A stretch of 64,000 nucleotides of DNA, taken from contig NC_135660.1 of the NCBI RefSeq assembly GCF_964188315.1, positions 99,200,001 to 99,264,000 of the forward strand, given 5' to 3'. The position numbers and the translations under genes are program-made. Numbering within the stretch: the stretch's first letter is position 1; each line of letters starts with the position of its first letter. The notes beneath the pieces are model-generated. The model saw nothing but the letters and a program-made list of their open reading frames with translations, did no database searches and was not told where the DNA came from. Below are positions 13,614 through 51,327 of this stretch, piece after piece. The stretch is from Podarcis muralis. Its lineage: Eukaryota.

Positions 13614-16600
13614 TCAAATGACAAGATAAACCATTTTTTTGCCGTTTATTTTTCTGGCTTTGAGCCCCAGGTGGTGTGTGCTTTTCCTCTCAGGATGCCC
13701 AAACAGAACTCTGTTGAAAAGCTCTGCATCAGCTGTGGATGCTGACCTGCAGGTTACAAAAAACCAGACCCTGCGAATCTTATGAAACAGAAAATTTACT
13801 ACCTCTGCTTCGTCAGAAGGCTCTTCATAGACGGGTTGCTTCATGTCCTCATAGGCAGACATAATCACAGCTTGAAATAAATTGATCAAAACGCAGATCA
13901 TCACCATCATGAACGAAGCCAGGAAGAGACCCCCCAGAATCCTATTGGATGTAAAGGCAGTGTCTTTAAAAGCCGAAACACAGTAAGAGAAGACTGTCTG
14001 AGCAGAATGAGTCATTGTGTTGTAATTCCATTCGTGTTGTCCAAATACCAGGTAACCAAATGCCATGTATACAAAGAAGTACACCGCCACCACTAAAGCC
14101 ATAGAACAGATGCCAGGAAGGGCTGCTAAAATAGATCGCTGAGCCAGGCGCACATCGTAAAAGAATCGGGAATACCGGAGAGTTTTCAAGACTATGAGGA
14201 AGACCAAGAAACCCAGAGTTATCCGCAATGTTTGATCAACATGGGAAACTTTATGGAACGGAACAAATTCATCTGGGTGAAGTAAAAACAATTCTGTTAT
14301 TGCAGAAGCCAATTTAAATTTGAAGGCAAGCTGCAAAAGGAAGAAGACACACACACCCTTTATCCCAAAATTAATTAAATTTGAAACAGTTTTTATGTAT
14401 TTTAGCCTTTGTTGCTCCACCACAGAAAACTCATCGATGATGTAAAAGACAAGAATATAGCCAACAGCTATATAGACAAACTTTTTCATACCACTTAGCT
14501 GCTTGAAAATGGGGAGTGTGTATGAATGGATTATCAAGCTTGTGTTAACAGGGCCTAAATTAGAAATCTCAAATACAACTGAGATACTGCAAAATAAATC
14601 GACATCTGGATTAAAAGTTGTCATCTCAACTATCAGTGCCCAGGTATTTTCATCAAGCCAGCTGCTCCCTTTCAAAGCATCGATTCTTTTTGTTGAGTTA
14701 TGCAGTTGCTCTTCAGGATAAAAATCAAAAGTGTATCCTGCTGCTCCATAAGTGTTTAGTTCTCCATATGAATTATATTGCCAAGGATCCGGGAGGGAGT
14801 GGTAAGTGAAGCCTGGAAAATTGGCAAAATTATTTGAAACAGACCTATTGGCTGTGTTTGCCCAAGACCCAAAGTGGTTTCTTTGCTCTTCCCTGTCATG
14901 GCCATACTTGTGAAGGCAATGGCTTGTACTAATCACAAATTTATGTACAAAACTATGTGGATAGAAACATTCTTTTATTGTATTCTTTGCTCTAACTTGC
15001 CGCATTCTGGGTAACCCAAGGATTTTGGACCAGGTATCTGAAAGATAGGATGGTTTGTTATTGTTGTGGATCAAAGGCAGAAAGACATTGCTAAGCCAAC
15101 TGTAAATGTGCTCTATTTTAGTGATACTTGAAAGCTCCGGAGAGAACTTGTTTTGAATATCCTGGTTGTAGTAAAAACTAGCAGTGTTTTCCATTGAGTA
15201 AGCAATGTTTAAAACAAGAATTAAAAAGACAAAGTGACATATTATGTCCTTTATGAAAATGAAAGCTTGTTGTTCAATCTTCTGTTTTTTCTTAAAAATT
15301 GTGATTTCATCCTCTTCCAGGGGTTGGTAGTGCTTGGTACCTCTCGCTCTAACGAGGTCATAATGCAATTCTCGCATATCATCAGCATCCATAGTTGCAT
15401 CTTCCAGATTAATCTCTAAGAAGGTGTTTTTGCTTGACCATGGAACATTTTCACAGTATTTGGGATAAAGTGTCTCCAAGGCTGAAAAAATCCCTATGGT
15501 CAGAGTTTGAAGCAAAAATACACATGCAGAAAAAGAGATGGTGGATGCTGTTAGCCACTCGAATGATGTTTCATAGTCATAGTGCAGACCATAAAATATG
15601 ATAAAAAATGATGACACAGCAGATATGACCAAGGCCACCATCCACAAAATAGATTGATTCCACCATGAAAACACTATTTGTGGCTTTCTATAAAAGAGCA
15701 TGTGGGGAATATTTGGTGGTTTTATCTGAGGATATATATCATTCTTTACATAATTATTACTAGAATTGATATTGGGCTTAGAATCTTGGGTTATGTCCTC
15801 TTCTGTTGCAATTACATTTGCATCACCCTCAGAAATTGTGCAGTTGGTCCAACTTTTTCCTGCCTGTCGCCATTTTATCTTTTTTGATTGTTCCAGTTCG
15901 GATGATTCTGAGACACTGGAAGGCCTCCTTGGGAAATTAGGTCCTGGGATGTTTGAACCAGTTTCTACAAGGTACCACTTCTGCAGACGTTCCTGCCAAT
16001 TTCTAAAGTCCCCAGACATGAAAGCAGAGTATTCTGGAGGGTAGGTCTCCATTGCATTCAGTGGTGAAGGTTCCTTCTGAGAATATTTCAGGGAAGCTGT
16101 TACAATCATTTGCAAAGGAAAAGCAATGAAAGCACTTTGGATTCCGATTATTATGGATCTCAAATATTGTAACTCTTCAGAAAACATGTTTCGATCCTCA
16201 TCTGCGTTGAAGAACATAACGTTGATAAGCAGGATGCACAATAGTATTGCTAAACAACAAGAAAGCCGTTGAAGCCTGTTCAAAGAAGTTGAACAGACAT
16301 GAGCAAAGATCGAGAACCATAAGTGACAATCCACCAGGTCATTGGCAATGTTTATCATTAAGAAATCAATTTTGTTTAAAGGTGCTGCTGGCTGAGTAAC
16401 AACTAATGTCCTCTCTATTAGGCCGTCTGCCTTGTCAAGAGCAAACCATTTCCGGCACATGAACACCCAAGACTGTTTGGAGTATATGTTTTCCACTTTG
16501 ACTCTACTCAAGAACCAATCAGGGGAAGAACCTGCATTATTGTGCCAGACTTGAAGGCAATAAATTTCTCCGAGGTCATTCTTACTCGTCAAGAGAAAAG

Positions 16601-19600
16601 TATCAATGGCCCCTCGAAGAAAAGTCGGGTGTTTGGGGTGTCTTAAGCAATGTACGTCACTGACAGCACTTTGGCCGATTAGCTGAATAAAAACATTGGC
16701 TGTGGTTGCTGCTCCAAAACGGCTGCCTGTGTATATTGTGACCAGGTAGCACACTTGATCAAAAGGATCATTGTCTGGCAAGACTATGGCATGGTCTCTG
16801 CTCTTCATATCGGCCCTATCTTTTCTTATTGTCCAAATAGCCAAGAAGATGTATACTACCAAAATGAAAAGTACCGTCAACATTGTCACAGGATTTTTGT
16901 CGTTTTGGGTTAACTGGACCTCTTTCATTTCTACTGGACTGGGATATGCAGTTACTTCCCCAGCCAAAAAGTTGATGTTATCTCTGTAGGTTCTTCTTGG
17001 CTGAGAATTTGCAGTCCTTGGAATACGCTTTTTGCCTGTGCAAATGCAATGTAATTTTTGCCAACTGGTCTGAGGGCCAAGGCTGCAGAGGTCTTCTTTC
17101 CAATGACTTTGGACTCCATCCATGTGTAAGCAGTTGGCAGTAAAAATCACAATGCCAACTAGCTGACTTACAGAAAGGTCGGATTGTAAAACAATGGATA
17201 TGTTCAATTGTTTTGCACTGTTGCCTTGGAATATTGTTCTGAGCAATGTCTGGGAAAGACAAAATATGTACGGAGTCTGAAGTGCACAGCCATTATTACT
17301 GGAGCTATTTCTCCTTGGTATTGCAGGTTTGTTATGGAAAATACTAAAAGCCGCTACAGCAAGATTGCTGTTCCTTAAACCTAGGTATACAAATGCCTGG
17401 AAAGTGACCTTTAGTTTTGGCATAATCTGAATGAAAATATCTTTGGAATTCTTACAGACTTCAAAACTAAATTCTCCAGTTGTTTTAGGGAGTTTGCTGC
17501 CATGTCCCATCATCAACTCAAAGATGACAGTTTCTTCATTTTTTCTGGTCATTATAATTTCTGCTGTATCAGGCATGATTCCAAGCATGTCACCATTAGA
17601 TTTGGTCCCTATCATCTTGAATCCAGTCACCATTGTGCCAATGTTATCTGTATTTGGCAACCAAGGAAAAGGATTCTTGTCAAACTCATAAACAACAGTG
17701 GAGATCACAGCATCCACTGGTAATTCATTGTTCTCCTGTCTCATTTTGGGATAAAAGCAGTTCCTGCAGTCTTTTCTCTTTGAGAAAGCACTGATAACAT
17801 CCCACTTTTCATCTTTTCTTAATGTGATGCTCCAACCATTGGCTTCCATAATAGTTTCACTCTCTCCAGGAACTTTACCTTGTAAAATTAGGTCCGCTAA
17901 AATCTCACTGACAGAGATGGTTTCCTTAACCCCATTTTTGTGAACAGTTCTATGTTCTAACAGAGCAGCTTTCAGGACATTGGACAACCCTGCAAAAATA
18001 CTAGTGCAAAGAACCTCTGTTTCTTTAGAACCTAGGTTGTCATTGCTCTGCCTTTGCACTTCTTCACTTAAATCTTTGAGTTTTCTGATGGCAAGTAGTT
18101 GCGATTTCCTATTTATTTCAGTGGTTTCCTGTGTTATCTGAGAAATACTTGAGATCATTTGGTTTGTCCCTGTTACGTCTATTGTAGGGATAGCTGCAGA
18201 CCTATTTAGAAGGATTTCCCGCAGTTCAGTTTTAGAGGAATGAAATTTTTGCAAGCTTTCAATATCATTTAAAGTAGAAGCCACCATGTAGACAAAATAA
18301 CCTGCCCTAAAATAGTCTCCACTTTTGAGAAAAGATGCTATTGGAGCTGTGGGTCCATGGGTTAAATCATGTAATTCATTTATTATGGCATCATTTTGCT
18401 TACCTTTCAATGGACTATTCACCATTGTCTGTAAAGTTATTTGGGAGTATGCTCCAAGTGCATCATAAATTTCAACATATACTTTTAAAGCACCAGTGGG
18501 TAAAAAAGTTGGTGGAGTTTTAGGCTGATGCCCACAATACACAATTGTCCCCAATATACCGTTGTCTGGAGAATGTAGTCTAGTAGAGGTCCATTTATCT
18601 GATACTGCTTTGACTTTATATGTAAGAGGCAAATTTTTATCTTTAAACCCACTACAGTGAACAATGAATTTTGTTAAGAATGACATTCCCATGGCAGGGC
18701 TAAGGACACACTTTCCCGGTACTGGTGGAAAGTTTACAAAAAATAAGTAACTATAGACTGATGACTCTCCTTTCCACATGCTCACTTTTAAAACAAGCAT
18801 ATATGATTGTTCTCTCATATTCACAAAACTCAAAGAACGTATACATAAGTATGGACTTGATCTTCCAGTTGTAGTCTTAGAGTCCCAGTCAAAATGTATT
18901 TCGGTGGAATTTGGTGAGAAAAGTGACCAGTGGTAGAGTGGTCTGCTAGATTTTCTGCAATTTAGACATTTACCAGAAAGACAAAATCTTTCTGTTGGTA
19001 TTATTGACCTACCACAATTTTCAATACATGTGATATTCAGCATCAGTGCAGAGTCAGACCGCACATGTATCATTTGCTGAGCTTGAGCCGTTCGGCTTCC
19101 TTTTTGAACTACCAGGAGAAAATAATAAACAACATTTTCCTGAAGCGTTTTGGGTAGAACTGTTTGAACTGGGTCAGAGGAAGCTGTCCATTTCAAATCC
19201 ACTTGTTCTGGATAACATTTTCCATTTCCACTTAAGATCATGGATGCAAAGTCTGTTTTTTGTTTAGTGCAGTACCAAGTAAATGTGAGTCCTTCAAAGG
19301 GTTGGGCTGCATCAGGATCAGAAGAAGCGGATCCATCCAGAGTCCACTGGCTAGAAAAACCAACTGTCTGCACAGCACCTCCAGCAATGACAGCCACAAG
19401 ACTGCCTGGTCCAATCGCTACAAACACTGAATCAGAGTCTTCCACACTCTCCAAAGTATCCATTGCAATTAATTTCACTGTAAAATTAAAGAGGTACAAA
19501 CCATAATCTAAGCTAGATGCAGGAACTTCTAACATGAGAAGATTTCTGCTTCCAATGCCAGGTGCATTAAATGGTTTTGACCAGTCTGGAGTACTGTTCA

Positions 19601-21653: not shown

Positions 21654-22879
21654 AGTACCTGAACAGCAGCAGTTCCCTAAGGTCTCAGGAAGATGGTTTT
21701 AAGAAGCTGTTTCTTAAAACCCCATAAATTCATCCTCCTCAGAGGAGGAAGAGTGAAAAACACTACATAATTCCTCTGATGGCTGAAGTAATCCCCCACT
21801 CCAGTTTTTGGAATTGTGCCCTAGGCACTTCAGAGGACGCTGCAGCCTTTTGCTGAGGGAGAGTAGATTTTATCAGGTCGCCCTCTTCTTGACTCAGCAC
21901 AGCCTGCCTTTTTCTGCAAGCACAATGTCTCTGCAGCACAGTCTATATGCTTAGACTGCTGCACTGCTTTCCTTGGACCCACAAGAGGGTTCAGGTATTG
22001 TTGATGCCACCATCTCCTGCTCTGATGTCCTTCCTGGGTACAGAAGAGGAATAACTCAATAAAATAGGCCTTCAGCAGGGCTAAGGCTAGATATGCACCT
22101 GTGCCAGGAGCGAGGGCGCAAGGCCGCCAACCACACAGCAAGCATTTTGGGTGGGAAACTGCAGGCAAGCAGTAGGACTACTCTGAGGCTCTCCCCCCCG
22201 TCATGTCCTCTGATCACTCCCACCCGACAGCAGCAGCAAGGAAAGGGAGAACATGAAGAAAGGTTCTTTGTAATTTCATAAAGTTTTAGTGGAAAAAATA
22301 GCTGCAGAAGGAAACTAAATGTGTGTGGGGGAAGGCGCACAGCCACTCTGGAGGGTGAGGAGAAGGGCTGTGAGGGAGCTCAGGCAGAATAATCAGTAAG
22401 GCAGATAAGGCTAAAGTCAATTAGAAGAAAGATAAGATCAGGAAATAAAAAGGCTCAAGGATTGCAGAGCAAATAAAAGGCTGGCTACTGTCAACAAGGC
22501 AGAGAAGAAAGCTGGAGATGTGCTGGCCCACTTCTCAGAAATCTCTGCTCCTTCCTTGTCATGTGACCAGGGATATCATCCGACCCAGGGCCTGAATGGC
22601 ACCAGAAATAAATATGCCATTAAAAAAAATTTTTTTTAAAAGACCCAACGCGCAGCATTGATAGAACAAGTTAATTGTAAGTAGTCAACTGCTGCCTCTG
22701 CTGGGGTTGGGTGGGATTTCTGAATGTTGATTGTTGCTTCGTGTTTCTCATATAAATAAGTAAAAATAATAAAGTATTTGTGGGGGGACCCATTTGAGAA
22801 TACTGAGGGATGGGGCTTGCTTTATCTAATGTGGAACTGAATCCCATAACTCTGGGGCCACTGCCAAAATGGCCCTGTT

Positions 22880-23080
22880 CCATGTGCCCAACAACCTTTT
22901 AATCTTTACTTGCAGACATCTCAACGGGGCCTCCAAGATCATAGAGTACACATAGGTTGACACAGCTGCAGGCAAAAAGTAAGGTAACCCAGGCCCAAAC
23001 CATTCAGGCATTTAAAGGTAATCACCAGGACTTTGAATTGGGTCTGGAAATACACTGGTACAATATGTATTCTGACCATC
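22880..23080 (-). mobile_element. Decayed L2-clade LINE ORF2 C-terminal fragment
   Basis: Translates HIVPVYFQTQFKVLVITFKCLNGLGLGYL, resembling L2 LHWLPV..R.QFKVLVLTFKALNGLGP.YL; similar decayed sequence appears to continue on both sides of the provirus. Confidence 0.6.
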
Positions 23081-23081
23081 T

Positions 23082-23454
23082 GGGGGTGGCTGGCACTATG
23101 GTCTAAACCACTGAGTCTCTTGGGCTTGCCAATTGGAAGGTCAGCAGTTCGAGTCCATGCAATGGGGTGAGCTCTCATTGCTTTGTTCCAGCTCCTGACA
23201 ACCTCGCAGTTTGAAAGCATACCAGTGCGAGTAAATAGGTACCATTGCAGCAGGAAGGTAAACAATGTTTCCATGCACTCTGGCCCTTGTCTCGGTGTTC
23301 TATTGCGCCAGAAGTGGTTTAGTCCTGCTGGCCACATGACCTGGAAAGCTGTCTGCGGACAAACGCCGGATCCCTCGGCCTGAAGTGAGATGAGGCCTGC
23401 ACCCCATTGTCAAATTTGACTGGACTCAACCATCTAAGGGTCCTTTACCTTTAC
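23082..23454 (+). mobile_element. Sauria SINE
   Basis: tRNA-like head (ggtctaaaccactgag...gttcgagtcc), body aggaaggtaaac...ggccacatgacc, tail cctttacctttac; about 370 bp. Confidence 0.85.
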
Positions 23455-23563
23455 TTCTGACAATCTGGCTCCAACATCTGGCTACAATTGCGTCAACTGA
23501 AATTTCTGGATGATCTTCAAAGGCAGCTGCCTGCAGAGTGCCTTACAGTAGTCTAGCCCCCAT

Positions 23564-23897
23564 TGTGGGAAAATGATTGCTTGTACATGAGAGCATGAGC
23601 AAGGTTCTTATTGTTACAGGGTGATTTCATAGCTAGAAGCATCCTTGGAGCATGAACAGCGCGTGAACAGCTCGTGCTGTCCTATGATTGGCTAATGTGG
23701 CATGGCCTGATGCTCGCATAAGTCTAGTGCGAAGGTCCTTATCTGCTTGCTAGAACAAATTGCTTGGCTTGTACTTTGTATCTTTCTGATTTCACACAAT
23801 AAAAGCTGCGCTGCATCAGCCCTAGGAGCAGCCATATTTCGGAACTTATTATGATGTGAGACTGACTTTTCTTTGGATGCCGAGCTGCAACTCGACA
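23564..23897 (+). repeat. 5' LTR of the provirus
   Basis: tgtggga...ctcgaca, contains AATAAA, followed by the PBS; matches 27392-27725. Confidence 0.97.
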
Positions 23898-23899
23898 AT

Positions 23900-23914
23900 T
23901 GGTGCCCCGTGTGA
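23900..23914 (+). promoter_or_regulatory. Primer-binding site complementary to elongator tRNA-Met
   Basis: tggtgccccgtgtga 2 nt after the LTR; matches 15 nt of the recalled vertebrate tRNA-Met(CAT) 3' end ...CUCACACGGGGCACCA. Confidence 0.75.
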
Positions 23915-24246
23915 CTGACTTCGGACTTCACGTTGTTTTTCATTATTCAGCACTCACCAACACGTCGTTCATCCACGTAGTGGATCCCTGGTGAGTGCTC
24001 CCGTGTGATTTCTTTCGGACTTCATGCTGTTTTACAACGTTCAGCCTCACCTCGCCCGGCAGGGCTGCAGACGCGTCGTTCATCCACGTAGTGGATCCCC
24101 GGTGAGAGCTCCCGTGTGAATGTGATTCTGGACTACGTTACGGACTTATCAGCACTTACCTCGCCCGGCAAGGGCTTCAGGCGCCATTCATCCTTCCGAG
24201 GATCCCTGGTAAGTTGCTCCCTGCTCTTTTTGCAACTCTTGCAATC

Positions 24247-25482
24247 ATGGGAAAGTCTCTCTCTGCACCACAGAAAAATTTTTTTAAAGACCTTAAATTC
24301 CTTTTGGCCAGTAACAACCTTGCTGTTCGGAAAGCTGACCTTAAGTCCCTTATAAAAGCCCTGGACACTCACTGTCCCTGGTTCCCCCAGGACGGAAATT
24401 GGGAGTTAGACGATTGGAAAAAAATTGGACACTTCTTTCAAAATCATCCTCAGATTGATGTCAAGGTTTTGCATGCCTGGGGTAACGTCTACAAAGCTAT
24501 GTCGTGCTTAACTCCTTCAAACATTCTTCTGGCTGCTGCAACAGCTTCTTCGCCCGCCCTCCAAGCTCCCGCTCTGCCTGCCTCAAACCTACCTCCTAAA
24601 CCGCCGGACATTCTCCCTTCGCCTCCTCCTGTCTCTCCCCTGCATTCTTCAAATTCTGCAGCACCCCCCGCTCTTCCACCTCCTCTGCCCAAGGCATCTG
24701 GCACCGCTTCCACCCCACTTCAAGAATCTCTCCGTGCCGCCGCTCCGTTGTTGGCTTTTGATTCTACAACTCCTAATCTTTTTCCTGTGATTGCTCCTGC
24801 CGCCCCAGGGGGAGGCCCAGCCCGGCACGAACAGTTTGATTTGAGATTCATAAAGGAACTGTATTCTTCTGTCAAGGACAATGGCCCTGCACCCCCAGCC
24901 CCCATTATGCTGAACCAAACTGATGTTCTTGATGGCTTAACTGGCGAAGGCAATTTTCTTACTATTGCCCAACAGTTGGCCCTTGATTCCATGTATTGGA
25001 CAGCTACTACTGCTGCCGCCCAAGAAGCCTTGTCCTCTGTTCCTGATGACAAGAATGAGCGAGATGGCCGTTGGGGCAGCATCAGACAGGGCCCTACAAA
25101 GCCCTATGGACAATTTGTCGATCGCTTGGATAACACTCTTAAGCGGCAAGTTCAGGACGTAGCAGCCCAAGAACTGATTGTCCGCCAGCTTGCGTTTGAG
25201 GACTGTAAGCAAGCACTACGCCCTTTGATGACAACTCCTAATATAGCCATTGCAGATGTGCTTAAAGCCTGCCAGTCAGTGGACACTGAGACACATAAAG
25301 CTTGCCTGCTAGCCACAGCTTTGTCTTCCACCGTGTCCCAGAATCCTGCAAAGGATAAAACCTGCTTTGGATGTGGCAAAGTGGACTATTTTCGTGCGCA
25401 GTGCAGATCTACCGCACAGCAATGTCACTCCAGCACAAAGTGCCCCATCTTTGATACAGGCCAGGACTTGTCAATTTTCTGA
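24247..25482 (+). CDS. gag: Betaretrovirus-like Gag, open but internally deleted (411 aa)
   Basis: MGKSLS myristoylation motif; MA CPWFPQDGNWELDDWKKIG (class II type); Pro-rich region; CA major homology region IRQGPTKPYGQFVDRL; degenerate zinc knuckle CFGCGKVDYFRAQC. Confidence 0.9.
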   Translation: MGKSLSAPQKNFFKDLKFLLASNNLAVRKADLKSLIKALDTHCPWFPQDGNWELDDWKKIGHFFQNHPQIDVKVLHAWGNVYKAMSCLTPSNILLAAATASSPALQAPALPASNLPPKPPDILPSPPPVSPLHSSNSAAPPALPPPLPKASGTASTPLQESLRAAAPLLAFDSTTPNLFPVIAPAAPGGGPARHEQFDLRFIKELYSSVKDNGPAPPAPIMLNQTDVLDGLTGEGNFLTIAQQLALDSMYWTATTAAAQEALSSVPDDKNERDGRWGSIRQGPTKPYGQFVDRLDNTLKRQVQDVAAQELIVRQLAFEDCKQALRPLMTTPNIAIADVLKACQSVDTETHKACLLATALSSTVSQNPAKDKTCFGCGKVDYFRAQCRSTAQQCHSSTKCPIFDTGQDLSIF

Positions 25483-25720
25483 AGCACATCTTAGATCACA
25501 TATTGGTCACCCTGGTTATTTGGCAAAAAGAATTTTACGCCTGCTGAACTTCATTTCTGGAAGGAAGAAATATTGCAGCGTCCTTTGGTGTCTTACAGGT
25601 TGCTTCCAGATCCACAGTGGAAGGGTCCAACTCCCTTGATTTCCTGAGGACCTCCCACTTAATCTCAACCTGCACTGCAGTTGGAGACATCGCCATATTG
25701 ATGTGCCCTGGATAAAGTCA
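25483..25720 (+). pseudogene. Integrase C-terminal remnant (pro/RT/RNaseH absent)
   Basis: Translates ...LVSYRLLPDPQWKGPTPLIS*G..., the W(K)GP motif of class II IN C-termini, with an in-frame stop; only about 800 bp separate the gag stop from the env ORF. Confidence 0.65.
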
Positions 25721-26294
25721 CCTTCCACAGCTGTTGTAGTGTTTCCTGGCACGTTGAAAGACCATCTTCGTTCCTACCCCTTTTTCTCTGGGAAGCCACT
25801 TCAACCATCAAATATCATTACAGTTTTGCTGCCTCTTGTTTGGGAAATGAGCCTGGCTTTGAAGGATGCCCTCGCCGGACCAGCATCGCTTGGACTTTAC
25901 CCCCCAGATCTCTTCTTCTTTTCTCCTCCCTCAGGAGTCCTGCCCTATGATGTATTCCCCTGAGCATGTACAGAAAACTGTCTTTGAACAATTGTGGACT
26001 CTTGGCAGGGGAGGGGGTGAGGGGATTTCAGTGTGTTCCAGTTGTTTCATTCTTGTGCTTTGGCATGGTTCCCGGACAGAGGGCAGGTTGTGTGTGTTTC
26101 TTTATCAAGGCCTGAGAAGACAATGGGCTCTGTTCTCTACCTTGTTGCAATTTTTTTAAGTTACAGCAAGCAGCATATGCTTGGCTAGTGCCTTTTAGCT
26201 GCTGAGAAGCATGATTTTGAAAAGCTCTGAGAAGCCTTGAGCTTGTTTTGGTGGTGGTATTCCAGTAAATGCTTCATATAAGATTAGCAATAAT

Positions 26295-27347
26295 ATGAAG
26301 GACAATCGCATAAGTTTACCTCCTGTATTTCTATCGCTTGTAGAATTAGCTCCTTATTGTTTTCATTTTAATCACAGTAGCAAAAAAATTTTAGGTCATT
26401 ATCCATATTGTAATTGGACACATGAATACATTAATGAATCTTCTTGTTTTCTTAATGTTACAACCATGAGTGGCAGACCAAAGGTTTTAATTAATAATGT
26501 CCCAACTTACATGACCTATGAACAACAAGCTGCGTGTAGAGACTTTTATGTTTGGTTCGACTGGATGAGAAAGAGCAGCAGAACTACATGTTTGCTTCAA
26601 TCTGATTTATGGTTATTTTGTGGCACACGTGCCTACAAAGAAATCCCCTCTGCCTTTTCTGGTACCTGCACGTTAGGTATAGTAGTACCCTTGGTATATA
26701 AAATAGATAAGCTCCCAGCGGTCCGTTTGCGTAACAGAAGGGAAGTACAATCACCTATTTCTCAATATACAGGGACAGCCATCTCTAGGTCCCTTCTGCC
26801 TTCTTTAGGTGCAGCCATGAATTACCGTGATTTGCATAAATTGGCAAACTGGACAGAAAATTTGTTTAATTCCACCATTTTGGCTTTAAAAATGATTAAC
26901 AAAGAAATATCAGAAATAAGAAATGTAGTTCTTCAACATCATTATGCTTTAGATGTGATCCTTGCTTCTAAAGGTGGAATTTGTGCCTTAATTCATTCTC
27001 ATTGCTGCATGTATATAACTGATCAATCGGCCAATATCTCTGCTACTATTGATCATATGGAACAAATGATAGCCCATAATCCTTTGAATCCACCTGAAGG
27101 TTTTGATCCATGGGAGTGGTTGTCTTCTTGGCTACCTAATGGATTATGGTTAAGAAAAATATTATTGATTGTAATTGCATGTATTGCTGGCTTCATTATG
27201 GTGTGTTGTTGCATTCAATGCATACCCTCTTTGATTTCCCAATGCACTGCATGGTGGTACCGACCACGGCCCACCACAGGGGTTACAAGAGGAATTTATG
27301 TTGCAAAGTGTAGACGCTTAGGCAATGAAGTGTACGATTTGGACTAA
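26295..27347 (+). CDS. env: Gamma-type Env, N-terminally truncated SU plus intact TM (350 aa)
   Basis: LFCGTRAYKEIPSAFSGTCTLG SU motif; furin site RNRR; ISD LQHHYALDVILASKGGIC; CX6CC (CALIHSHCC); hydrophobic anchor. A signal-peptide-like MGSVLYLVAIFL at 26123 is in another frame with intervening stops. Confidence 0.88.
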   Translation: MKDNRISLPPVFLSLVELAPYCFHFNHSSKKILGHYPYCNWTHEYINESSCFLNVTTMSGRPKVLINNVPTYMTYEQQAACRDFYVWFDWMRKSSRTTCLLQSDLWLFCGTRAYKEIPSAFSGTCTLGIVVPLVYKIDKLPAVRLRNRREVQSPISQYTGTAISRSLLPSLGAAMNYRDLHKLANWTENLFNSTILALKMINKEISEIRNVVLQHHYALDVILASKGGICALIHSHCCMYITDQSANISATIDHMEQMIAHNPLNPPEGFDPWEWLSSWLPNGLWLRKILLIVIACIAGFIMVCCCIQCIPSLISQCTAWWYRPRPTTGVTRGIYVAKCRRLGNEVYDLD

Positions 27348-27391
27348 TGGTCCCTCTTTTCCTCTAATAATATAAACAAGAAAAGGGGATA

Positions 27392-27725
27392 TGTGGGAAA
27401 ATGATTGCTTGTACATGAGAGCATGAGCAAGGTTCTTATTGTTACAGGGTGATTTCATAGCTAGAAGCATCCTTGGAGCATGAACAGCGCGTGAACAGCT
27501 CGTGCTGTCCTATGATTGGCTAATGTGGCATGGCCTGATGCTCGCATAAGTCTAGTGCGAAGGTCCTTATCTGCTTGCTAGAACAAATTGCTTGGCTTGT
27601 ACTTTGTATCTTTCTGATTTCACACAATAAAAGCTGCGCTGCATCAGCCCTAGGAGCAGCCATATTTCGGAACTTATTATGATGTGAGACTGACTTTTCT
27701 TTGGATGCCGAGCTGCAACTCGACA
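27392..27725 (+). repeat. 3' LTR of the provirus
   Basis: Preceded by the PPT, followed by the TSD ccccat; matches the 5' LTR. Confidence 0.97.
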
Positions 27726-27929
27726 CCCCATGGATAACTGGGGCAAAGTCCACTCTCTCCAGATAGGCTGGATAAGGACCTAATTGGACCCTAAGCTGGT
27801 AAAAGCTGCCCCTGGCCTCTACCACCACCAGCATTCCCAATTAGCGCTGAGTCCACTGAGTTCTACAAAGGACAAACAGGCCAGTCTCTATACAAAAGAA
27901 AGAATGAATACAAATTTAAAATCAGGAAA

Positions 27930-28068
27930 GGCCTGGGTAGCTCAGCTGGTTAGAGTACGGTGCTGATAACACCAGATTCGCAGGTTTGAGCACCATACGG
28001 GGCAGCTGCACATTCCTGCATTGCAGAATCCTCAAAGTCCCTTCCAACTCTGCAATTCTATGATTCTA
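27930..28068 (+). mobile_element. tRNA-Ile-derived SINE with CR1-type 3' tail
   Basis: Head ggcctgggtagctcagctggttagagtacggtgctgataacacc resembles tRNA-Ile; tail gtcccttccaactctgcaattctatgattct is a CR1 3' end. Confidence 0.75.
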
Positions 28069-28199
28069 AGGCAATACTGAGCAGCCCTATTTAGGATCCA
28101 CTCTGCTCACCCCCAAAAGGGAAAGGGCTAGAAAAGGTGCTCTAAACATAGTCTGCCTCCCTTTTTCCCTGACTGGATTACCGAGCCCTGAAGGGTCAC

Positions 28200-29999: not shown

Positions 30000-30066
30000 C
30001 TCAACATGAGTGATTTGCTGTTGTCTTTTGAACCTATGTTTTCTTAGTGTTAAGTAGATTTATACT

Positions 30067-31966: not shown

Positions 31967-34900
31967 TTATTCTTCCTTTTTAAACTGTTGCACATAGTTT
32001 TTTCTTTGTTTTCCATACAGCATCCTGTTAAACATGACTGTCTGTGTTGTGGTCCGTGTACCAGTGGTCACAAAAACCCATGCACTATAGATCTTTTGGA
32101 TCACAAAATCCATCATTTCAGCTTCGTGTGCATGTTCTGGATAGATAGATCTCTTTGCCTCCGTATAAGCAGAGATCATAATAGCTTGCAATAAATTGAG
32201 GAAAACACAAATCATCACAAACAAAAAGGAAGTTAAAAAGAGCCCTGCCAGAAACCTATCAGCTGCAAATTCAGTTCCCCTAAATGCTAAGGCGCAGTAA
32301 GATAACACAGTAGTAAAGGAATAAAGCAAAGTACGGTAACTTTCTTCGTGTTGGCCAAATCCTAAATACCCAACTGACATATATGCAAAAAAAAAAATGG
32401 CCCCTCCTACAGACAAGTTAGTAATTGTAGGAAGAGCTTCAAACAATGACTTTTGGGCCAAGCGGACATCAAACATAAACCTGAGATACCGGTATGTTTT
32501 CATAACGAGGAAAAAAGCCAATAATGCCTTAACTGTTCTGACAACTCGATCGAAATGAGCAGCTGCATGGAAGGGAATGAATTGTTCTTGATTATACAAA
32601 TAAAACTGTATTAACTCAAAAGCAAGCTTAAGTCTGAATAGAATCAGCAGCAAAAAAATTAGACAGACTGTCTTAATTCCAAAATTAATTAAATTGGCAG
32701 CTGTTTTTATATAATTCAGCCTTTCTTGACGCAGCATGCGATATTCATCCACAATATAAAATATAAGTATAGCTACAATACATAAAAAAAAGAAAACTTG
32801 ACTACTGGTTCGGTCAGCTAAAAGTGGGAGCTTATAAGAATGAACTGACACACTGCTGACAAGAGGGCCAACATATGAACATTCAAATATGACAGAAATA
32901 CTGCAAAACAGATCTGCATCTGGATTAAAAGTGGTCAGCTCAATAATAGTTACCCAGGTCCTGTGATCAAGCCAGGTGTTGCTTTCCAAAGTCTTCAATC
33001 TTTCTGTTGAATTTATTTGTGGTTCTCCTGTGAAAAAATAAAAGCTGTATCCTCTGGATGGGTAGCTGTTTAATTCTCCATATGACACATATTCCCACTC
33101 AGCAATGCTTTGTTCATAAGTGTAGCCTGAAAAGCTGGTGGGGTTGGCAGCTGGACGATTGACTGGAGCTGACCACGACCCATTGTAGTCAGCTTGATCT
33201 TCTGGGTCACCTCCATATCGGTGTACACAGTGAATATCCGTCAGAAATGCTTTTTGAAAGCTATGTAGATAGGTACATGCCCTGTCAGAATGTATACCTC
33301 TTATTTGTCTCATTCTGGGCGACCCAAGGACTTTGGACCAGGTCTCTGAAAGATAGGTTGGTTGATAGTCATTGTGTATCAACGGCAGAAGGATTTTTTC
33401 CACCCATTTGTAAATATCTTCTACTTTATTTACTTCAGATAAACCAAGAGAAAATTTCTTACGCATAAATCGATTGTAGTGAAAGCTACTGGTGGTTTCT
33501 GTAGGATGAGTATACTTTAAAATTAAAGCTAAAAAGACAAAGTGACAGACCATATTTTTTGCTAAAATATAACCTAGACTCTTAACAGTTGCTTTTTTCC
33601 TCAATATTATAAGCTCTTCGCCTTTAATTGGTTGGTATTTCTTTGAAGCTCTAAGTTTGACAAGGTTATCACGTAACTGTCTCATCTCATTTGCAGGGAT
33701 AGTTCTGTCATTAAACTTAAGATCTTGGTATCTTGTCCATGGGATATTTCTGCAGTATTTTGGATAAATGGTATTCCAGGCTGTAAAAAAAACTACCTTA
33801 AAGGTCTCAAGGAAAAGCACAGTTAGGCAAAATGAGGTAATGGAAGCTATTAACCACTCAAAAGAGGTTTTAGTGGAATAGGGTTGGCCAAGTAGTACAA
33901 TGAAGAATGAGAGCACACCAGATACAGAAAGCACAATGATCCAGGCGATGTATAGAACCCACCAAGTAGACTGTGGTTTGTGTATTTTCTCAGAAAATGT
34001 TTCATTTTCTGCTGCAACATTATTGCTGGAATTGGTGTCTCTGTGGGGGAATTGCTGGGACTTCATCTCTGAGGGTGGAGCAGCTTTTAAATTGCCTTCT
34101 TCACAAAGGTTTTCAGATGAAAAGGAGGAACTTCCTTTTGGGTGAGCTTGAGCTACATTGTGGGCTGAAGGTTTCTTTGATAAATGCTTAAACAAGGTTA
34201 CTAGAATCAATTGCACAGGAACTGAAATCAAAGAACTTTCTATTCCAATTGTTATAGATCTCAAATACTGCAGTTCTACTGAATAAATATGTTGGTCAAT
34301 ATCGTTGAAGAATATAGTGTTAAACATCAGGGAGCTTAACAGTATTGCTAAGCAACAAGTCAGCCTGAGGAATCTGCTGAAAGAGTCATCGTCTAAATGG
34401 ACAAAGACAGACAGCCAAAGATGGTTCTTGAACAGGTCATTGCTAATCATAATACAAAAATAATCAGTCTTGCTTAAGGGTACACTGGGATTTGTAACAG
34501 TAAATGACCTTTCTATTTGGCAATCATCCCTGCCAGGATCAAACCATTTCCTACATATAAATAGCCATGACTGTTTGGTATCCATGTTTTGTACTTGGAT
34601 TCGGCTTAAGAACCAGTTAGGACCAAAGCCATGATTATTGCGCCAGATATGAAGAGAACAAATGTTTCCTAAGTCTCTCTCAGTAGTTAAGAGAAAGGTG
34701 TCAATGGATCCTTCCTGGAAGATCCCTGGGAACTGTGGATGTTTTAAATGATGTACATCACTGGCCCCATTTTGGCCAATCAGTTCAATGAAGACATCAG
34801 CATTGGTGCCTGATCTTAAACGACTTCCTGTGTATATTGTGACTAGATACCTCACCTCGTGAAAGGGATCATTGTCTGGCAAATCTATGACCTGATCCCT

Positions 34901-46500: not shown

Positions 46501-49500
46501 AACGTCTGCTGTGGTTCCTGATCCCAAGCGACTTCCTGTGTATACAGTGACCACATAGCGCACTTTATGGTAGGGGTCATTGTCAGGTAATACTAGTATT
46601 TTGTTTTTCCTTTTCAAATCAGCTTTATCTTTGATCATGGCCCAGGTAGTACACAAGATGTAGGCTGAAAAAATGAAAAACACAGCCAGCATTGTCACTG
46701 GGTTTGTGTCAAAGTCTGCTGAGAGGACCTTGTTTATATCCAAAGGATTAGGGTACAAAATGAAGCTGCCAGCTACAAATCTGACAGCATGAGAAGCCTC
46801 CTGTGATTGGCGTCTACTTCTTGTTGTGCTGTGGGCTTTTGCTTCACAGATGCAGTGTATCTTGGACCAGGTGGTCTGAGAGCCCAGGCGGCACAATCCT
46901 TCTTTCCACTGTTTCTGAATGCCATCCATACCTAGACAATTGGGTGTATAAACAGCAATGCGGACAATCTTTCTGGTTTGTCCTCTCACAATTGGGTGTG
47001 ATTGTAGTACAACTGAAATGTTCCACTTGCTTGCTTTATTGCCTTGGAGTGGAGACTGAAGCAATGACTGAGGAAGACAAAGTATGCGCACAGCCTTAAA
47101 TGCACAGTTAGTGATGCCAGGATTCATTTCACGTGGTGCTGGAGGTTTGTCATGGAAAACAATATAAGAAGCTATTGGAGAATGGCTGACATTGAGTCCC
47201 AGATAGATAGATATGTTGAAAGTAACTTTCATATTGCACAAAATCTGGATAAATACATACTTGAAGTTTCCTTTGACTTCAATACTAAATCCACCAGTTG
47301 TTTTGGAAAGCTTTTTATCTGGCCCAATTGTCAGATTAAATGTTGCAAAGTCCTTATTTTTCCTTGCCATGATAACTTCCACCACCTCGGGGGTAACCCC
47401 CAAGATATCACCATTAGCTTTGACTCCTACCATTTTGAATCCAGTCACTACTGTATGAATATCTGCTGCATCTGCCATCCAAGGGAAGGGATTCTCTTCA
47501 AACACATAATGCACTGTGGAAACCACAGCATCTGCTGGTAACTTAATGTGGTTCTCCTGCTTCAGCTGAGGATAAAAGTAGTTCTTGCATTGTCTTCCCT
47601 TAGAGAAAGTCCTAGAAACCTCCCACTTTTCACCTTTCCATAAGTGAATTGACCAGTTTTTAGCTTCCATATTAGTTTCATGTTCCCCAGGGACTTTACC
47701 TTGTAAGATAAGGTCAGCTAATATTCCTGTCACAGAAATTATTTCTTTAATTGCATTGACATTGACATTTCTATGGTTTAAGAGAGAAGCACTCAACACA
47801 TTGGACAAGCCAGTAAATATACCATTGCCAAGGACTTCTGCTTCCTGAGACCCTAGATCTTTGTCCCTGAGCCTTTTAAGAGTTTCAGTGGCCTCTTTTA
47901 GTGTTCTGACCGCAAACAGTTGTGCTTTCCTATTAACTTCATTAGCATCCTGTGTCACTTGACAAATACTTGAGACCGTTTGGGCTATCATCTGTATTTC
48001 AGTCAAAGGAATCACTGCAGACACATTAAGGAGGATTTCCCGCAAATCAGTTTTAGAGCCTTGACTGGTTGGCAAAGTCTCAATATTATTTAATACAGAG
48101 GCCACCATATAGGTAAGAAAGCCTATATTAAAGTAATCTTTAGTTTCAAGGAAAAAGGACATAGGGCCACTTTCCCCACTGATTAAACCATACAGTTCAC
48201 GGAGAAGAACAGTTGGTTTACTTCTTGGATTATAAACATTTGCTTCCAAAGTTACTTCAGAAAATACTCCATGGGCATCAGATACTTGAACATATATGTT
48301 TAAGGCATACTTTTTAGAGGGAATACCAGCAGGGAGAAATGATGGAGGGGTTTTTTGCTGATGACCCATATACACTATTATTCCAAATGTATTATTTTGT
48401 GCAGAAGATATTGCAGTCATTTTTGTTAGATCTGAATGTGCTATCACTTTGTATGTCAGAGGTCCATTTTTTTCTTCAAATCCAGTACACTGGACAATGA
48501 ATTTTGTACGGAATGCTATGCCTTCCCTTGGATAAATGATACATTTTCCAGTCTGAGGTGGAGAGCTAACATAAAATGAATGCCTATAAACAGCTGATTG
48601 TTTTCCCTTTGTGCTTACTTTCAGGCTAAGAGTATAGAATTTGTCTTCCATGTATCTGAATGCCAATGAATTTATATGCATGTATGGCTTTGATCTCCCA
48701 GTTGTAGTTTTGGAAGCCCAATCAAAATGTATTTCCTTAGAGTTTGCTGAAAGAAGTGACCAAAGGTAGACTGTTTGACTAGTTTTTGCACAATTTAGAC
48801 ATCTTGCGGACAGAATGAATCGCTCTGTTACTTTGATGGTTTTCCCACAATTTTCTAAACAAGTGGCATCCAGTATTGGTACAGAACCAGGCAGCACATG
48901 AACTGTTTGGAATGCATGGGCTGATTTGTGCTGCTTCAGAATTACTAGAATAAAATAATATTTTGAGTTTGCCTGAAATGTATTAGGTTCTACTTTTTGA
49001 ACTGGAGCACTTGAATGTGTCCAGCGTATATCTACTTGATTTGGACAGCATTTTCCCTCTGGGCTCAACCTCATTGTCGAATAGTCCAATTCCCGTTTGG
49101 TGCAATACCAATTAAAGGTGATACCTTCAAGGGGGTTGGCTGAATAAGGATCAGAAGAAGCAGATGCATCCAAAGTCCAATGATCAGAAACACCAACTGT
49201 CCGGAACAAACCACCAGCTATGGTTGCTACCAGGTCATTTTCTAGAATTTGGAGAAATACTGAATCAGACTCCATGATTTTTATATTATATGCAGGAAGG
49301 TACACTGTCATGGTCATATTTACATGATGAAAGCCATAAAATAACACATTTCTAGGTATATGAAATATGATTCCACTTGTATTTATCTCATCAGGTAGCT
49401 TAAGAGGATTTGGCCAGTCTGGAATAGAATATGCAGCTTCAAGGCTATAGATTTTCCACAGTATATCTATATCTGCACTTGTCCTGCACTGTGCCTTTGC

Positions 49501-51327
49501 AGTTGCTTGCAAGGTAATTGCTGACTCTCTCTTATAATGTATGATTGGATCAGAGAAATCGGGTTTATGGATTATAGCTGTCAGTTCATGACAGTAACTT
49601 TGCTGACAGGCCACTGTTGGGTGTAGGACCTTTGACGCGAAAGTATTGATACTGGCTTTTAAAACAGCGCGTGCAAGTCCACTTTTGCTGCAATTCACTT
49701 TGGCTACAAAGCCCATGTATTGTGAAGGACGGATAGATAAAACAGAGGGAGGGAGAAAATGGGCAGCATCTTTGACACCGTTACTGTAAGAATAAGTGTT
49801 GTTCCAAAGGAGGTACTCTTTCCTGGAATTAAAAAGTTGAAGGTTAAAGACCCACTCACACTGTAGCAGTGGATGTTGCACGGGAATAAACCACACAATA
49901 TAGACTAAACTTTTGTCAGGAGAATGTCCATTGAAAACGTGAACTTCAATATCTTTTTCTCCTAGAGACCTGAACAAAGTCCCTTTCCGATTCAGATACA
50001 CATGGATGCTGAACTTGGACAATTGCAGCTGCATGAATTCAACAATGATCAGGTAACAGAGGCTCTGCTCCTCGTAAAAGATATAGTGGGAGCTGTAGCC
50101 CTTCCTAGTGGTGGTAGTAGTGCTGTCTTCCTGTGTAGAATAGTACAATCCCAGTGTATGGCTAAAAATGTAGATGCCTCTTCTAGTTTTCTGTGGATTG
50201 AGTGTGAGATAAGTTGCGGCTCCGGTGCTTGCTCTGAAAATCAAAGTCTCATTAAAGAAATCAAGTTTTCCCGCCAGTTGTTCAGGCATCTTCTCATTAG
50301 TACGAAAATAGACACTGGCCACCACTTTCTCCCTGGAATTTTGTGGTTTGCGAACAGCACAGAAATCACTTTGCAGAGCAAAAGGATTATATCTGTAGGA
50401 GTCAGACCATTCCTCCACACCTTGCAAATCCACCAGTGTGTAAGCTGTTATTTTGGAGCTGAGGGGTTGGAGAGTCCATGAAAGATTGAGGGTCCTATGA
50501 GGAAGGCTGAGCAGTGTGGAGGAGGTGCTGAACACATGGAGCAGAGTAGGCTGCACATAGAAGCTCAGGCTACGTCCAAGTGGAGGCCCATTCTCAATAT
50601 GGAGTGAAGCGGTGTAGAATCCATGGAGGTGGTAGCGTACAGTTATGTAGTAGCTGTAATATGATGTACACGCTTGGTGCATTTCTGCATGAGGATAAAC
50701 AGTAGGTGCAAGTGGCTCGCTATAGAGGTTGCTGGGGATGAGGAGGTCTTCAGGAATACCCCCTTGACTCTTGAAGCGGTAACTCCAGGTGGAACTCTTG
50801 AGGCGTGCACACCAACCCAGCTGCACTGGTTGCCACTCATGAATAGGTAAAGTACGTGGCGAGAGAAGGAAAAGACGGACATCCTGCCTGGAAATTTCAA
50901 TTGTCAGGTTCTTATGAGCACATGTGGCTACATGGCACGAAACAGATACACACTGCACTGTGATACGAATAGAAGCCCATGGTGGATGGAGGCCTCCCCG
51001 AGTCAGAGCTGCACCTAACACCAGCTCACCTGACCAGCGATTTGTATTCTTTACCAAGATGGAGTCTTGGTACCACTGACAGTGAGGAGGGGGTAGGGTG
51101 TCCAGCTTTCCCTCCTTGATCTCTGAAGGCAGACTTTGGGCTCTTGAATACTTCAGGGCAATTCTCTCATCCCAGAAGCATGAAACACGAAGTTCATTGT
51201 CATGCTTCTGATAGACACGGTGTTGTGGGTTTGAGCAGGTGACCAACAGTGGGGGTGGTAGAAAACGAAAGGGTGCAGCAGCTGTTGCATACTGAGAACA
51301 GTAACAGAAGAGGAAGACAAGAAGCAT
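43594..51327 (-). CDS. PKDREJ: PKDREJ-like copy 3, intronless (2577 aa)
   Basis: Uninterrupted ORF, signal peptide MLLVFLFCYCSQYATAAAP, LDASASSDP REJ motif, PLAT, channel, C-terminus RQVNGKKIVYLSV. Paralogue, so the symbol is family-level. Confidence 0.94.
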   Translation of the reverse strand: MLLVFLFCYCSQYATAAAPFRFLPPPLLVTCSNPQHRVYQKHDNELRVSCFWDERIALKYSRAQSLPSEIKEGKLDTLPPPHCQWYQDSILVKNTNRWSGELVLGAALTRGGLHPPWASIRITVQCVSVSCHVATCAHKNLTIEISRQDVRLFLLSPRTLPIHEWQPVQLGWCARLKSSTWSYRFKSQGGIPEDLLIPSNLYSEPLAPTVYPHAEMHQACTSYYSYYITVRYHLHGFYTASLHIENGPPLGRSLSFYVQPTLLHVFSTSSTLLSLPHRTLNLSWTLQPLSSKITAYTLVDLQGVEEWSDSYRYNPFALQSDFCAVRKPQNSREKVVASVYFRTNEKMPEQLAGKLDFFNETLIFRASTGAATYLTLNPQKTRRGIYIFSHTLGLYYSTQEDSTTTTTRKGYSSHYIFYEEQSLCYLIIVEFMQLQLSKFSIHVYLNRKGTLFRSLGEKDIEVHVFNGHSPDKSLVYIVWFIPVQHPLLQCEWVFNLQLFNSRKEYLLWNNTYSYSNGVKDAAHFLPPSVLSIRPSQYMGFVAKVNCSKSGLARAVLKASINTFASKVLHPTVACQQSYCHELTAIIHKPDFSDPIIHYKRESAITLQATAKAQCRTSADIDILWKIYSLEAAYSIPDWPNPLKLPDEINTSGIIFHIPRNVLFYGFHHVNMTMTVYLPAYNIKIMESDSVFLQILENDLVATIAGGLFRTVGVSDHWTLDASASSDPYSANPLEGITFNWYCTKRELDYSTMRLSPEGKCCPNQVDIRWTHSSAPVQKVEPNTFQANSKYYFILVILKQHKSAHAFQTVHVLPGSVPILDATCLENCGKTIKVTERFILSARCLNCAKTSQTVYLWSLLSANSKEIHFDWASKTTTGRSKPYMHINSLAFRYMEDKFYTLSLKVSTKGKQSAVYRHSFYVSSPPQTGKCIIYPREGIAFRTKFIVQCTGFEEKNGPLTYKVIAHSDLTKMTAISSAQNNTFGIIVYMGHQQKTPPSFLPAGIPSKKYALNIYVQVSDAHGVFSEVTLEANVYNPRSKPTVLLRELYGLISGESGPMSFFLETKDYFNIGFLTYMVASVLNNIETLPTSQGSKTDLREILLNVSAVIPLTEIQMIAQTVSSICQVTQDANEVNRKAQLFAVRTLKEATETLKRLRDKDLGSQEAEVLGNGIFTGLSNVLSASLLNHRNVNVNAIKEIISVTGILADLILQGKVPGEHETNMEAKNWSIHLWKGEKWEVSRTFSKGRQCKNYFYPQLKQENHIKLPADAVVSTVHYVFEENPFPWMADAADIHTVVTGFKMVGVKANGDILGVTPEVVEVIMARKNKDFATFNLTIGPDKKLSKTTGGFSIEVKGNFKYVFIQILCNMKVTFNISIYLGLNVSHSPIASYIVFHDKPPAPREMNPGITNCAFKAVRILCLPQSLLQSPLQGNKASKWNISVVLQSHPIVRGQTRKIVRIAVYTPNCLGMDGIQKQWKEGLCRLGSQTTWSKIHCICEAKAHSTTRSRRQSQEASHAVRFVAGSFILYPNPLDINKVLSADFDTNPVTMLAVFFIFSAYILCTTWAMIKDKADLKRKNKILVLPDNDPYHKVRYVVTVYTGSRLGSGTTADVFLELIGKNGVSDVHHLKHPQFPTLFRAAVDTFLLTTKYDLGDLLSLHVWHNTGGSSPNWFLSRIKVQNMHTKKSWLFICRNWLGLGKADGKIERSIVAKNLKSSLDKMDYFWISFAKDLEDNHIWLSIFSQVVTGSFTRVQRVSCCLVIMLCNLLFNIMFFSGADDREILSVQLRYLKSMYIGFVSALFSIPLQLTIQILFTYSEEKPLLHNTRNGSKRSPSLMPETLEKEGKSAYSNGKDQHLPLSESNASNNNATDQDTSTTFEKEEPLHPEFMFFNKKPRFSWWCRYVSWTLVFLISGVSSSFIILYGLTYGFTTSMEWFIASMTSFFESVFLLQTMKLSLISAMSTISLKYCKNIPWISTEQYQNMKLIQSSVDEKDLRKLHHDLSKLRHSKEYEPLTEDEVIVLRKRVRAQHLAFVFVKDIVIHLVYSSCVFIAAFSAEPTTTFYYNKAIYNQFSFGLSDVNKLEHIYMWTSNVFLPLIHNDYHPTYVSESWSKILGLPRMRQVRAKNTEKECFPARNFAQGHMISESHCRYKYNSDPEDQSNYLGSWTIPTNQPTSKHSSSFQGFTYQSDIDQWEYKSYGVVDSYGPGGYSFYFFPGEQRPNTTMRMDDLQRNNWLDNRTWAVIFELTTFNPDVDLFCSISIVFETTDVGVVNSSLVVHSYKLSIFEYEPTSKRVVYGVIVYILAFYLADEFNMLRQERIGYLQTATNVNNFAIKTTSMFFLLLIALKFKLAFTLLEFHLLNPEQFVPFHVVSQIDQLYMMISGFLVFLLILKPYRYFRFLYDVRLAEKTMSVAFPEFVNLTLFAAVYFSVFTSFGYLTFGQSEWSFHTWILSLQTVVSYCFGAVKLASFSSNLWLGIFFQASCMFTMMFIFINLWRALIISTYNSMKQPTYEQHSDEAEAINFVVLKIQSIWFSITRQTPPTSDSDHVSTVIFGRSVVKDDYVCGLRSRQVNGKKIVYLSV

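Follow-up and report, generated by a model that had tools for sequence, protein, structure and literature searches.

PKDREJ is known in mammals as a single-copy, intronless polycystin-1 family member of male germ cells, and the mouse protein is reported to modulate the response of sperm before fertilization (cited in PMC9672506). Squamates differ in having three paralogs, and we describe their tandem array in Podarcis muralis, in a 64,000-nucleotide (nt) stretch of contig NC_135660.1 (positions 99,200,001 to 99,264,000; the window), from the first letter of which all positions below are counted. The closest description is that of Karin, Gamble & Jackman 2020 (PMC7038749), whose RELEC loci include “three tandem duplicates within squamates,” named PKDREJ_A, PKDREJ_B, and PKDREJ_C, with B absent in gekkotans. 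Their supplement gives B and C as “not present” in human, chicken, painted turtle, crocodile, and Xenopus. The triplication is already published and annotated in RefSeq, where many squamates have two or three copies entered as PKDREJ and PKDREJ-like. It is not a discovery, which answers the question left by an initial annotation of this DNA, whether the expansion had already been described in reptiles.

The window shares with that description three tandem single-exon paralogs of similar lengths (~7.8 to 8.1 kb), and the tree and gecko locus reported below reproduce it independently. The earlier study differs in that it uses these genes as markers for phylogenomics, calling their paralogy “clear and easy to trace,” and it contains no per-paralog selection analysis, domain-wise divergence, or conversion tract between B and C. 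The letters used here were matched to the published ones by inference, from the loss of B in geckos and by equating A with the single-copy gene. Transcripts for all RELEC loci were present in a pooled gecko transcriptome that included testis and that is neither paralog nor tissue resolved (PMC7038749).

The three lizard genes share with mammalian PKDREJ the domain order, the single coding exon, the lack of the HL-T/S tripeptide at the GPS, the CDPF1 neighbor, and a moderately high ratio of nonsynonymous to synonymous substitution (dN/dS). They differ from it in that B and C have a remodeled pore and S6 segment and B also has a truncated tail. Among solved structures, the PKD1L3-PKD2L1 channel (PDB 7D7E/7D7F) is the best match of A, B, and C from the TOP domain through S6, which is a relation of sequence only; PKD1L3 undergoes GPS cleavage, unlike PKDREJ, which lacks the motif (PMC9672506). 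The sea urchin suREJ proteins, with ten SpREJ genes reported in PMC1934368 and a mention in PMC9672506, likewise place several REJ-domain polycystin-1-like paralogs in one genome. The likeness is an analogy only. That expansion is independent, far older, and made up of proteins with 1 to 11 transmembrane (TM) segments, whereas in squamates every copy is a full-length protein of the 11-TM type and all belong to one tandem array.

Three tandem PKDREJ genes and their age

Exactly three giant open reading frames (ORFs) were listed in the window, which contains 0 N bases, and all three are on the minus strand:

13614-21653, minus strand: PKDREJ copy A (PKDREJ_A type), ORF of 2679 aa, identified by Pfam and by its place in clade A of the tree
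31967-39664, minus strand: PKDREJ copy B (PKDREJ_B type), 2565 aa, identified by Pfam and by its place in clade B
43594-51327, minus strand: PKDREJ copy C (PKDREJ_C type), 2577 aa, identified by Pfam and by its place in clade C, which includes geckos

The initial annotation had reported three intact, collinear ORFs on one strand, and these are borne out; the chance of a stop-free frame this long is ~1e-54 for each. The true start codon of copy A is likely to be Met58 (21482), the position used in the P. lilfordi annotation, for a product of ~2622 aa. The uninterrupted ORFs can be aligned over their entire length with full-length PKDREJ proteins, indicating a single coding exon. The word “intronless” holds for the coding region only, and the untranslated regions may have introns.

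All three proteins have the same order of Pfam domains, REJ, PLAT, Polycystin_dom, and PKD_channel, with E values from 1e-20 to 1e-93. The REJ domain (PF02010) matches over nearly the full profile length (E = 2e-93 for A, 9e-88 for B, and 4e-87 for C) and lies in a large N-terminal ectodomain. A strong hydrophobic segment just upstream of PLAT/LH2 (PF01477; E = 1e-19 to 2e-22 across the copies) was seen in every copy in a hydropathy scan, and that simple scan found most of the 11 TM helices, although not cleanly all. The C-terminal polycystin/TOP domain (PF20519) and PKD_channel (PF08016) were matched in each copy. In copy A the domains occupy residues 662-1122 (REJ), 1636-1741 (PLAT), 2174-2380 (Polycystin_dom), and 2392-2604 (PKD_channel), and A also has an Ion_trans match, which is lost in B and C. 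The C-terminal 570 to 580 residues have PKD1L3 (chain 7d7e_A) as their best PDB match (E = 4.5e-35 for A, 3.5e-37 for B, and 2.5e-36 for C), followed by PKD2L1, PKD2, and PKD1; thus, all three keep a recognizable polycystin channel module.

The GPS cleavage motif was considered as a difference between the copies and rejected. The canonical HL-T/S tripeptide is missing from A, B, and C and also from turtle, bird, platypus, and caecilian PKDREJ, and the alignment before TM1 reads “HCIC ... F(L/V)A,” with neither HLT nor HLS. Its absence is a trait of PKDREJ and PKD1L1, unlike PKD1, PKD1L2, and PKD1L3 (PMC9672506).

Protein identity between the copies is 50.5% (A/B), 48.3% (A/C), and 54.8% (B/C), the nucleotide identity of the coding sequences (CDS) is ~70 to 76%, and synonymous divergence (dS) between paralogs is 0.8 to 1.2. 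The copies had been called visibly divergent along most of their length, which fits these values with one qualification, a 390-nt tract in which B and C have 3 differences. Searches with A and C matched only PKDREJ and “PKDREJ-like” proteins, the best being P. lilfordi PKDREJ for A (98%) and P. raffonei PKDREJ-like for C (98%); for B, an alignment gave 99% identity to a P. muralis model and 92% to its Zootoca counterpart. These best matches point to a Podarcis-like lacertid.

Long, similar tandem genes are a classic site of assembly errors, and the near identity of B and C over 390 nt could be taken to mean that the cluster is an assembly duplication or a recent, lacertid-specific expansion and not an ancient squamate feature. 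However, an assembly echo, which the initial annotation had also discounted, is excluded by copies that are ~50% identical in protein and have a dS of 0.8 to 1.2. Each copy has closer orthologs in amphisbaenians, skinks, iguanians, snakes, and (for A and C) geckos than it has in its neighbors in the window. Gene order is matched in five other assemblies, and the tandem order recurs in the independent assemblies of Zootoca, P. raffonei, P. lilfordi, and Hemicordylus. We regard an artifact or a recent lacertid origin as extremely improbable.

A maximum-likelihood tree of 67 near-full-length proteins (2583 columns, rooted on amphibians) places squamate A, B, and C in one clade (support 100) that is sister to turtle and bird PKDREJ, with platypus and amphibians outside, in agreement with the identity first proposed for these genes. 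The squamate clade splits into A and (B+C), and each paralog clade repeats the squamate species tree; these supports are 100. Four gecko species are found in clades A and C, and none is found in clade B. Copy B is sister to all C sequences, including those of geckos, and for this reason both duplications are older than the gecko split. With the conversion tract removed, a constraint that grouped B with nongecko C cost 436 log-likelihood units (P = 1.4e-12 in the approximately unbiased [AU] test), so that the description of the copies as old duplicates stands. The Eublepharis locus reads TTC38-like gene, C, A, with a C-A spacer of 5.7 kb, and tblastn of that spacer for a B remnant found none, its only matches being the unannotated 5′ end of gecko A. 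Thus, B was lost in geckos.

As read from the tree, both duplications happened on the stem of lepidosaurs or of squamates, later than the separation from turtles and birds and earlier than crown Squamata. The squamate radiation spans >200 million years (PMC10379679), and the triplet is therefore roughly that old. Neither the full-length searches nor a domain-only search with the B C-terminal module brought up a tuatara or crocodilian sequence, so the older bound stays at the lepidosaur-archelosaur split; the domain-only search, which also covered short fragments below the length filter, gecko B among them, returned six fragmentary A- or outgroup-type matches and no informative species.

Some annotated products in other squamates depart from this pattern. 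A 4393-aa “uncharacterized protein” of Vipera latastei, ~1.7 times the length of PKDREJ, is 62% identical to A and 43% identical to C and probably represents two neighboring tandem paralogs joined in one gene model. Polycystin_dom and PKD_channel are missing from the annotated products of Hemicordylus B (2088 aa) and Rhineura C (2135 aa); either the models are truncated or these copies may be damaged at the 3′ end in the two species.

Selection, domain-wise conservation, and the B/C tract

Selection on each copy was estimated by the Nei-Gojobori method against close orthologs, for which synonymous sites are unsaturated. The dN/dS was 0.265 for copy A versus P. lilfordi (dS = 0.037; Fisher P versus 1, 4e-12), 0.377 for copy B versus Zootoca (dS = 0.10; P = 2e-19), and 0.243 for copy C versus P. 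raffonei (dS = 0.035; P = 7e-13), similar to the omega of 0.25 reported for sauropsid PKDREJ (PMC10776941). In the last 200 to 280 codons the values were 0.03 (A), 0.20 (B), and 0.18 (C). All three copies are under moderate purifying selection, with dN/dS far below 1. The initial annotation had proposed that the frames are held open by selection, and ratios of 0.24 to 0.38, with neither B nor C near 1, are what that proposal predicts.

Conservation is distributed differently along the three proteins. The S5-pore-S6 block and the C-terminal tail of copy A are almost invariant relative to amphibian, mammal, bird, and turtle PKDREJ, whereas B and C have many replacements in both. Copy B is the most diverged in the TM2-5 region, channel, and tail, and it lacks the conserved C-terminal GLK..NGKKMVYL motif. 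Sites at least 90% conserved among 12 nonsquamate sequences were taken as ancestral, and those kept were counted for each squamate clade. In PKD_channel, A keeps 97 of 106 such sites, compared with 58 for B and 46 for C (P = 1e-9 for A versus B and 2e-14 for A versus C). The order is reversed in the N-terminal ectodomain, where A keeps 81 of 146 sites, B keeps 106, and C keeps 102 (P = 0.003 for A versus B and 0.015 for A versus C). Conservation is thus complementary: A has the ancestral channel and tail, and B and C have more of the ancestral N-terminal ectodomain. This domain-wise divergence of the squamate copies was not found in the literature searched and is apparently new.

The loss of many ancestrally invariant channel sites and of the Ion_trans match in B and C could also indicate that one or both are dead or dying duplicates, with frames open by chance or through recent origin, and that only A works. 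Of the three copies, B shows the highest dN/dS (0.377), and geckos have lost it completely, as such a reading would have it. However, dozens of species in the B and C clades have an open frame of ~2570 codons, where the chance of even one is ~1e-54, and the dN/dS values given above are far below 1 for both copies, the last 200 to 280 codons included. Moreover, the channel modules of B and C match PKD1L3 at E values of ~1e-36, and some of the channel changes have become fixed within the clade, with a shift to a new, conserved residue at 10 sites in B and 15 in C. Decay of B or C is very unlikely on this evidence, and the complementary pattern of conservation fits modular subfunctionalization better.

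The divergence of B from C is interrupted at a single place, in the N-terminal ectodomain upstream of the Pfam REJ domain:

38225-38614, minus strand: B side of the conversion tract, B CDS nt 1051-1440, residues ~351-480
49939-50328, minus strand: C side of the conversion tract, C CDS nt ~1000-1389

In the window, B and C have 3 differences in the 390 nt of the tract, compared with ~7 to 16 per 30 nt in both flanks. In Hemicordylus and Rhineura DNA there are 0 to 5 differences per 60 nt in the tract and 15 to 38 outside it. At the protein level, B and C are 90 to 100% identical in this region (C residues ~300-540) within Rhineura, Tiliqua, and Hemicordylus but only 40 to 70% identical within the toxicoferans Pogona, Sceloporus, Erythrolamprus, and Candoia. 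The evidence for the tract is thus at the DNA level in the window, Hemicordylus, and Rhineura and at the protein level in Tiliqua. Just C-terminal of it (C residues ~550-700), B and C are at their most different, with 20 to 40% identity.

Trees point the same way. A tree built from the tract pairs B with C by lineage (supports of 100/100 in Hemicordylus, 100/99 in Tiliqua, 99/93 in Rhineura, and 100/99 in lacertids), in conflict with the whole-gene tree and with the tree from which the tract was removed, both of which separate B and C by paralog. Tract boundaries vary among lineages. A scan for exchange tracts involving A found only isolated windows of 40 to 80 residues, in Hemicordylus (A/B) and Tiliqua (A/C), and these are not established.

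A tract at the same place in four lineages could suggest functional constraint, that is, extreme purifying or convergent selection, and polishing of an assembly with reads from a paralog can homogenize sequences. Either would produce identity without gene conversion. However, the identity reaches synonymous positions, with 3 differences in 390 nt in the window and 300-nt runs with at most 1 difference in Hemicordylus and Rhineura. The tract is also not intrinsically invariant: it differs by 15 to 25% in nucleotides between species (84 to 85% identity for Podarcis-Rhineura and 74 to 75% for Podarcis-Hemicordylus), and the within-genome identity of B and C is therefore not due to constraint. The variable boundaries and the 40 to 70% identity in Toxicofera also tell against either source, and flanks that are ~30 to 40% different are too divergent for cross-mapping to occur only here, in four assemblies that are independent. 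We consider constraint or polishing an improbable source of the tract. The identity is most simply read as interlocus gene conversion that occurred repeatedly and independently at one spot of 0.4 to 0.6 kb in Lacertoidea and Scincoidea, with conversion between B and C absent or long ceased in Toxicofera. It may be sustained by a hotspot of recombination or by selection for an ectodomain module that both copies share. The recurrent B/C conversion tract was not found in the literature searched and is apparently new.

Retroviral insertion, spacers, and flanking genes

The spacer between A and B contains a retroviral element, oriented antisense to the PKDREJ genes:

23558-23563 and 27726-27731: target-site duplication CCCCAT, perfect 6 bp
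23564-27725, plus strand: endogenous retrovirus remnant, 4162 bp
23564-23897 and 27392-27725, plus strand: long terminal repeats (LTRs), 334 bp each, 0 mismatches, TG..CA ends
24214-25482, plus strand: gag ORF, Pfam Gag_p10 and Gag_p24 (betaretrovirus-like)
26295-27347, plus strand: env (TM-side) ORF, matching the C-terminal part of TLV_coat only; gamma-type, partial

A polypurine tract precedes the 3′ LTR. The element has no pro or pol, and its internal region is only 3.5 kb. The orthologous site is empty in P. lilfordi and Zootoca, with the flanks abutting. Together with the identical LTRs and the lack of pro/pol, the empty sites indicate a recent, internally deleted endogenous retrovirus. 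It interrupts no gene, and its insertion here was not found in the literature searched.

Outside the CDS, where duplicated promoters were sought, no sequence is common to the copies apart from one short inverted repeat of ~170 nt with 87% identity (41120-41277, upstream of B, and 51738-51906, upstream of C), which probably represents a dispersed repeat and not a promoter common to both genes. The C-B spacer (39665-43593) is 3.9 kb long in the window; its length is 8.3 kb in Zootoca and 9.8 kb in P. raffonei, where ~6.2 kb has no counterpart in the window, by insertion there or deletion here.

The order along the cluster is TTC38-like gene, then C, B, and A, and then CDPF1. Its flanks contain the following coding exons:

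4217-4351 and 5974-6141, minus strand: CDPF1, two coding exons, Pfam C6_DPF; same strand as the PKDREJ genes and downstream of A
56277-56438 and 60157-60414, plus strand: TTC38-like gene, first coding exons, from ORFs and synteny only

The initial annotation had placed the array between CDPF1 and TTC38. For CDPF1 this is confirmed by the C6_DPF profile (positions 1-23, E = 0.0015; positions 27-65, E = 6e-14), and in P. lilfordi the gene downstream of A is likewise a C6_DPF gene, of 186 aa. For TTC38 the placement rests on synteny: the translations of the two exons had no match in Pfam, NCBIfam, or PDB sequences. Both flanking genes were searched exon by exon. TTC38 is the neighbor of PKDREJ in mammals, and the name is unconfirmed here by any family model. 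The corresponding position in P. raffonei, Eublepharis, and Hemicordylus is occupied by a divergent 466-aa gene with faint tetratricopeptide repeat matches. The TTC38-like gene is head to head with copy C, and a GC-rich stretch at ~54 to 56 kb lies between them.

The intron of the TTC38-like gene contains repeat-derived ORFs (60927-63294, minus strand; 57973-58467, plus strand) with no Pfam match. A 248-aa ORF and two further ORFs there presumably represent C-terminal fragments of ORF2 of long interspersed elements, which they resemble, and a 164-aa ORF has a motif that we take to come from dispersed squamate repeats. Simple-sequence runs at ~10140-10640 and 11319-11607, between the GC-rich 5′ region of CDPF1 and copy A, include a long trinucleotide microsatellite (poly-Leu or poly-Asn by strand) and a tetranucleotide-type repeat that translates as “SIYLSIYL.” No RNA genes were found in the whole window with Rfam at gathering thresholds and a tRNA scan.

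Proposed roles of the three paralogs

The results can be combined in one scheme. Two tandem duplications on the lepidosaur or squamate stem yielded C, B, and A, and moderate purifying selection has kept all three copies functional for roughly 200 million years. A complete polycystin-1-type receptor/channel subunit is encoded by each, with a large REJ ectodomain, a noncleavable GPS region, TM1, PLAT, and a six-TM channel module. Judging from their homology to mouse PKDREJ and to the PKD1L3-PKD2L1 complex, the products are most likely subunits of the sperm membrane, which would pair with PKD2-like channel subunits and tune the response of sperm to the egg coat or oviduct. Copy A has kept the ancestral pore, S6, and C-terminal tail almost unchanged, while B and C have remodeled the channel module and kept more of the N-terminal ectodomain. 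Recurrent gene conversion ties B to C over one ectodomain tract in Lacertoidea and Scincoidea. The 4.2-kb pol-deleted retrovirus landed recently in the A-B spacer, touching no gene.

Several points weigh against this scheme or parts of it. Sperm expression, partnering with PKD2-like subunits, and subfunctionalization are inferred from homology and patterns of conservation, and a literature search found no paper on the function, expression, or molecular evolution of individual squamate paralogs. The species sets differ between the per-clade conservation counts. The whole-gene tree comes from a quick LG+G4 search, and the hypothesis used in the AU test was framed after the tree had been seen. 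The older bound on the duplications is loose, with no tuatara or dibamid sequence in the tree, and the TTC38 name is unsupported by any model. We nevertheless give a probability of about 90% to the reading of this locus as a squamate PKDREJ cluster of three ancient, selected paralogs with a putative role as sperm subunits, modular divergence, and gene conversion between B and C.

The initial annotation had suggested that the three paralogs could have distinct ligand or channel partners, and the complementary conservation of domains gives some indirect backing to this possibility. A division in which A is a conserved channel or signaling core and B and C are diversified or shared ligand-facing parts is speculative. 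A more specific version, which we hold to be rather unlikely but worth stating, is that selection and not a mere hotspot keeps a B/C module of ~130 to 180 residues identical in at least four lineages over >100 million years, with release in Toxicofera, while A supplies the pore and tail of a modular receptor-channel system. If this is true, B and C share a ligand-binding piece and A holds the conserved conducting or signaling piece, and breakdown of the tract might track changes in fertilization biology in snakes, iguanians, and anguimorphs.

For phylogenomics, the B/C tract breaks the assumption of clean paralogy under which these genes serve as markers, and ~0.4 to 0.6 kb should be masked in Lacertoidea and Scincoidea. 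PKDREJ is among the few candidate sperm-side receptor/channel genes common to vertebrates, and its function is poorly defined even in mouse. Three full-length paralogs maintained over ~200 million years, one of which keeps the pore and tail and two of which keep the ectodomain, would amount to a natural dissection of this protein.

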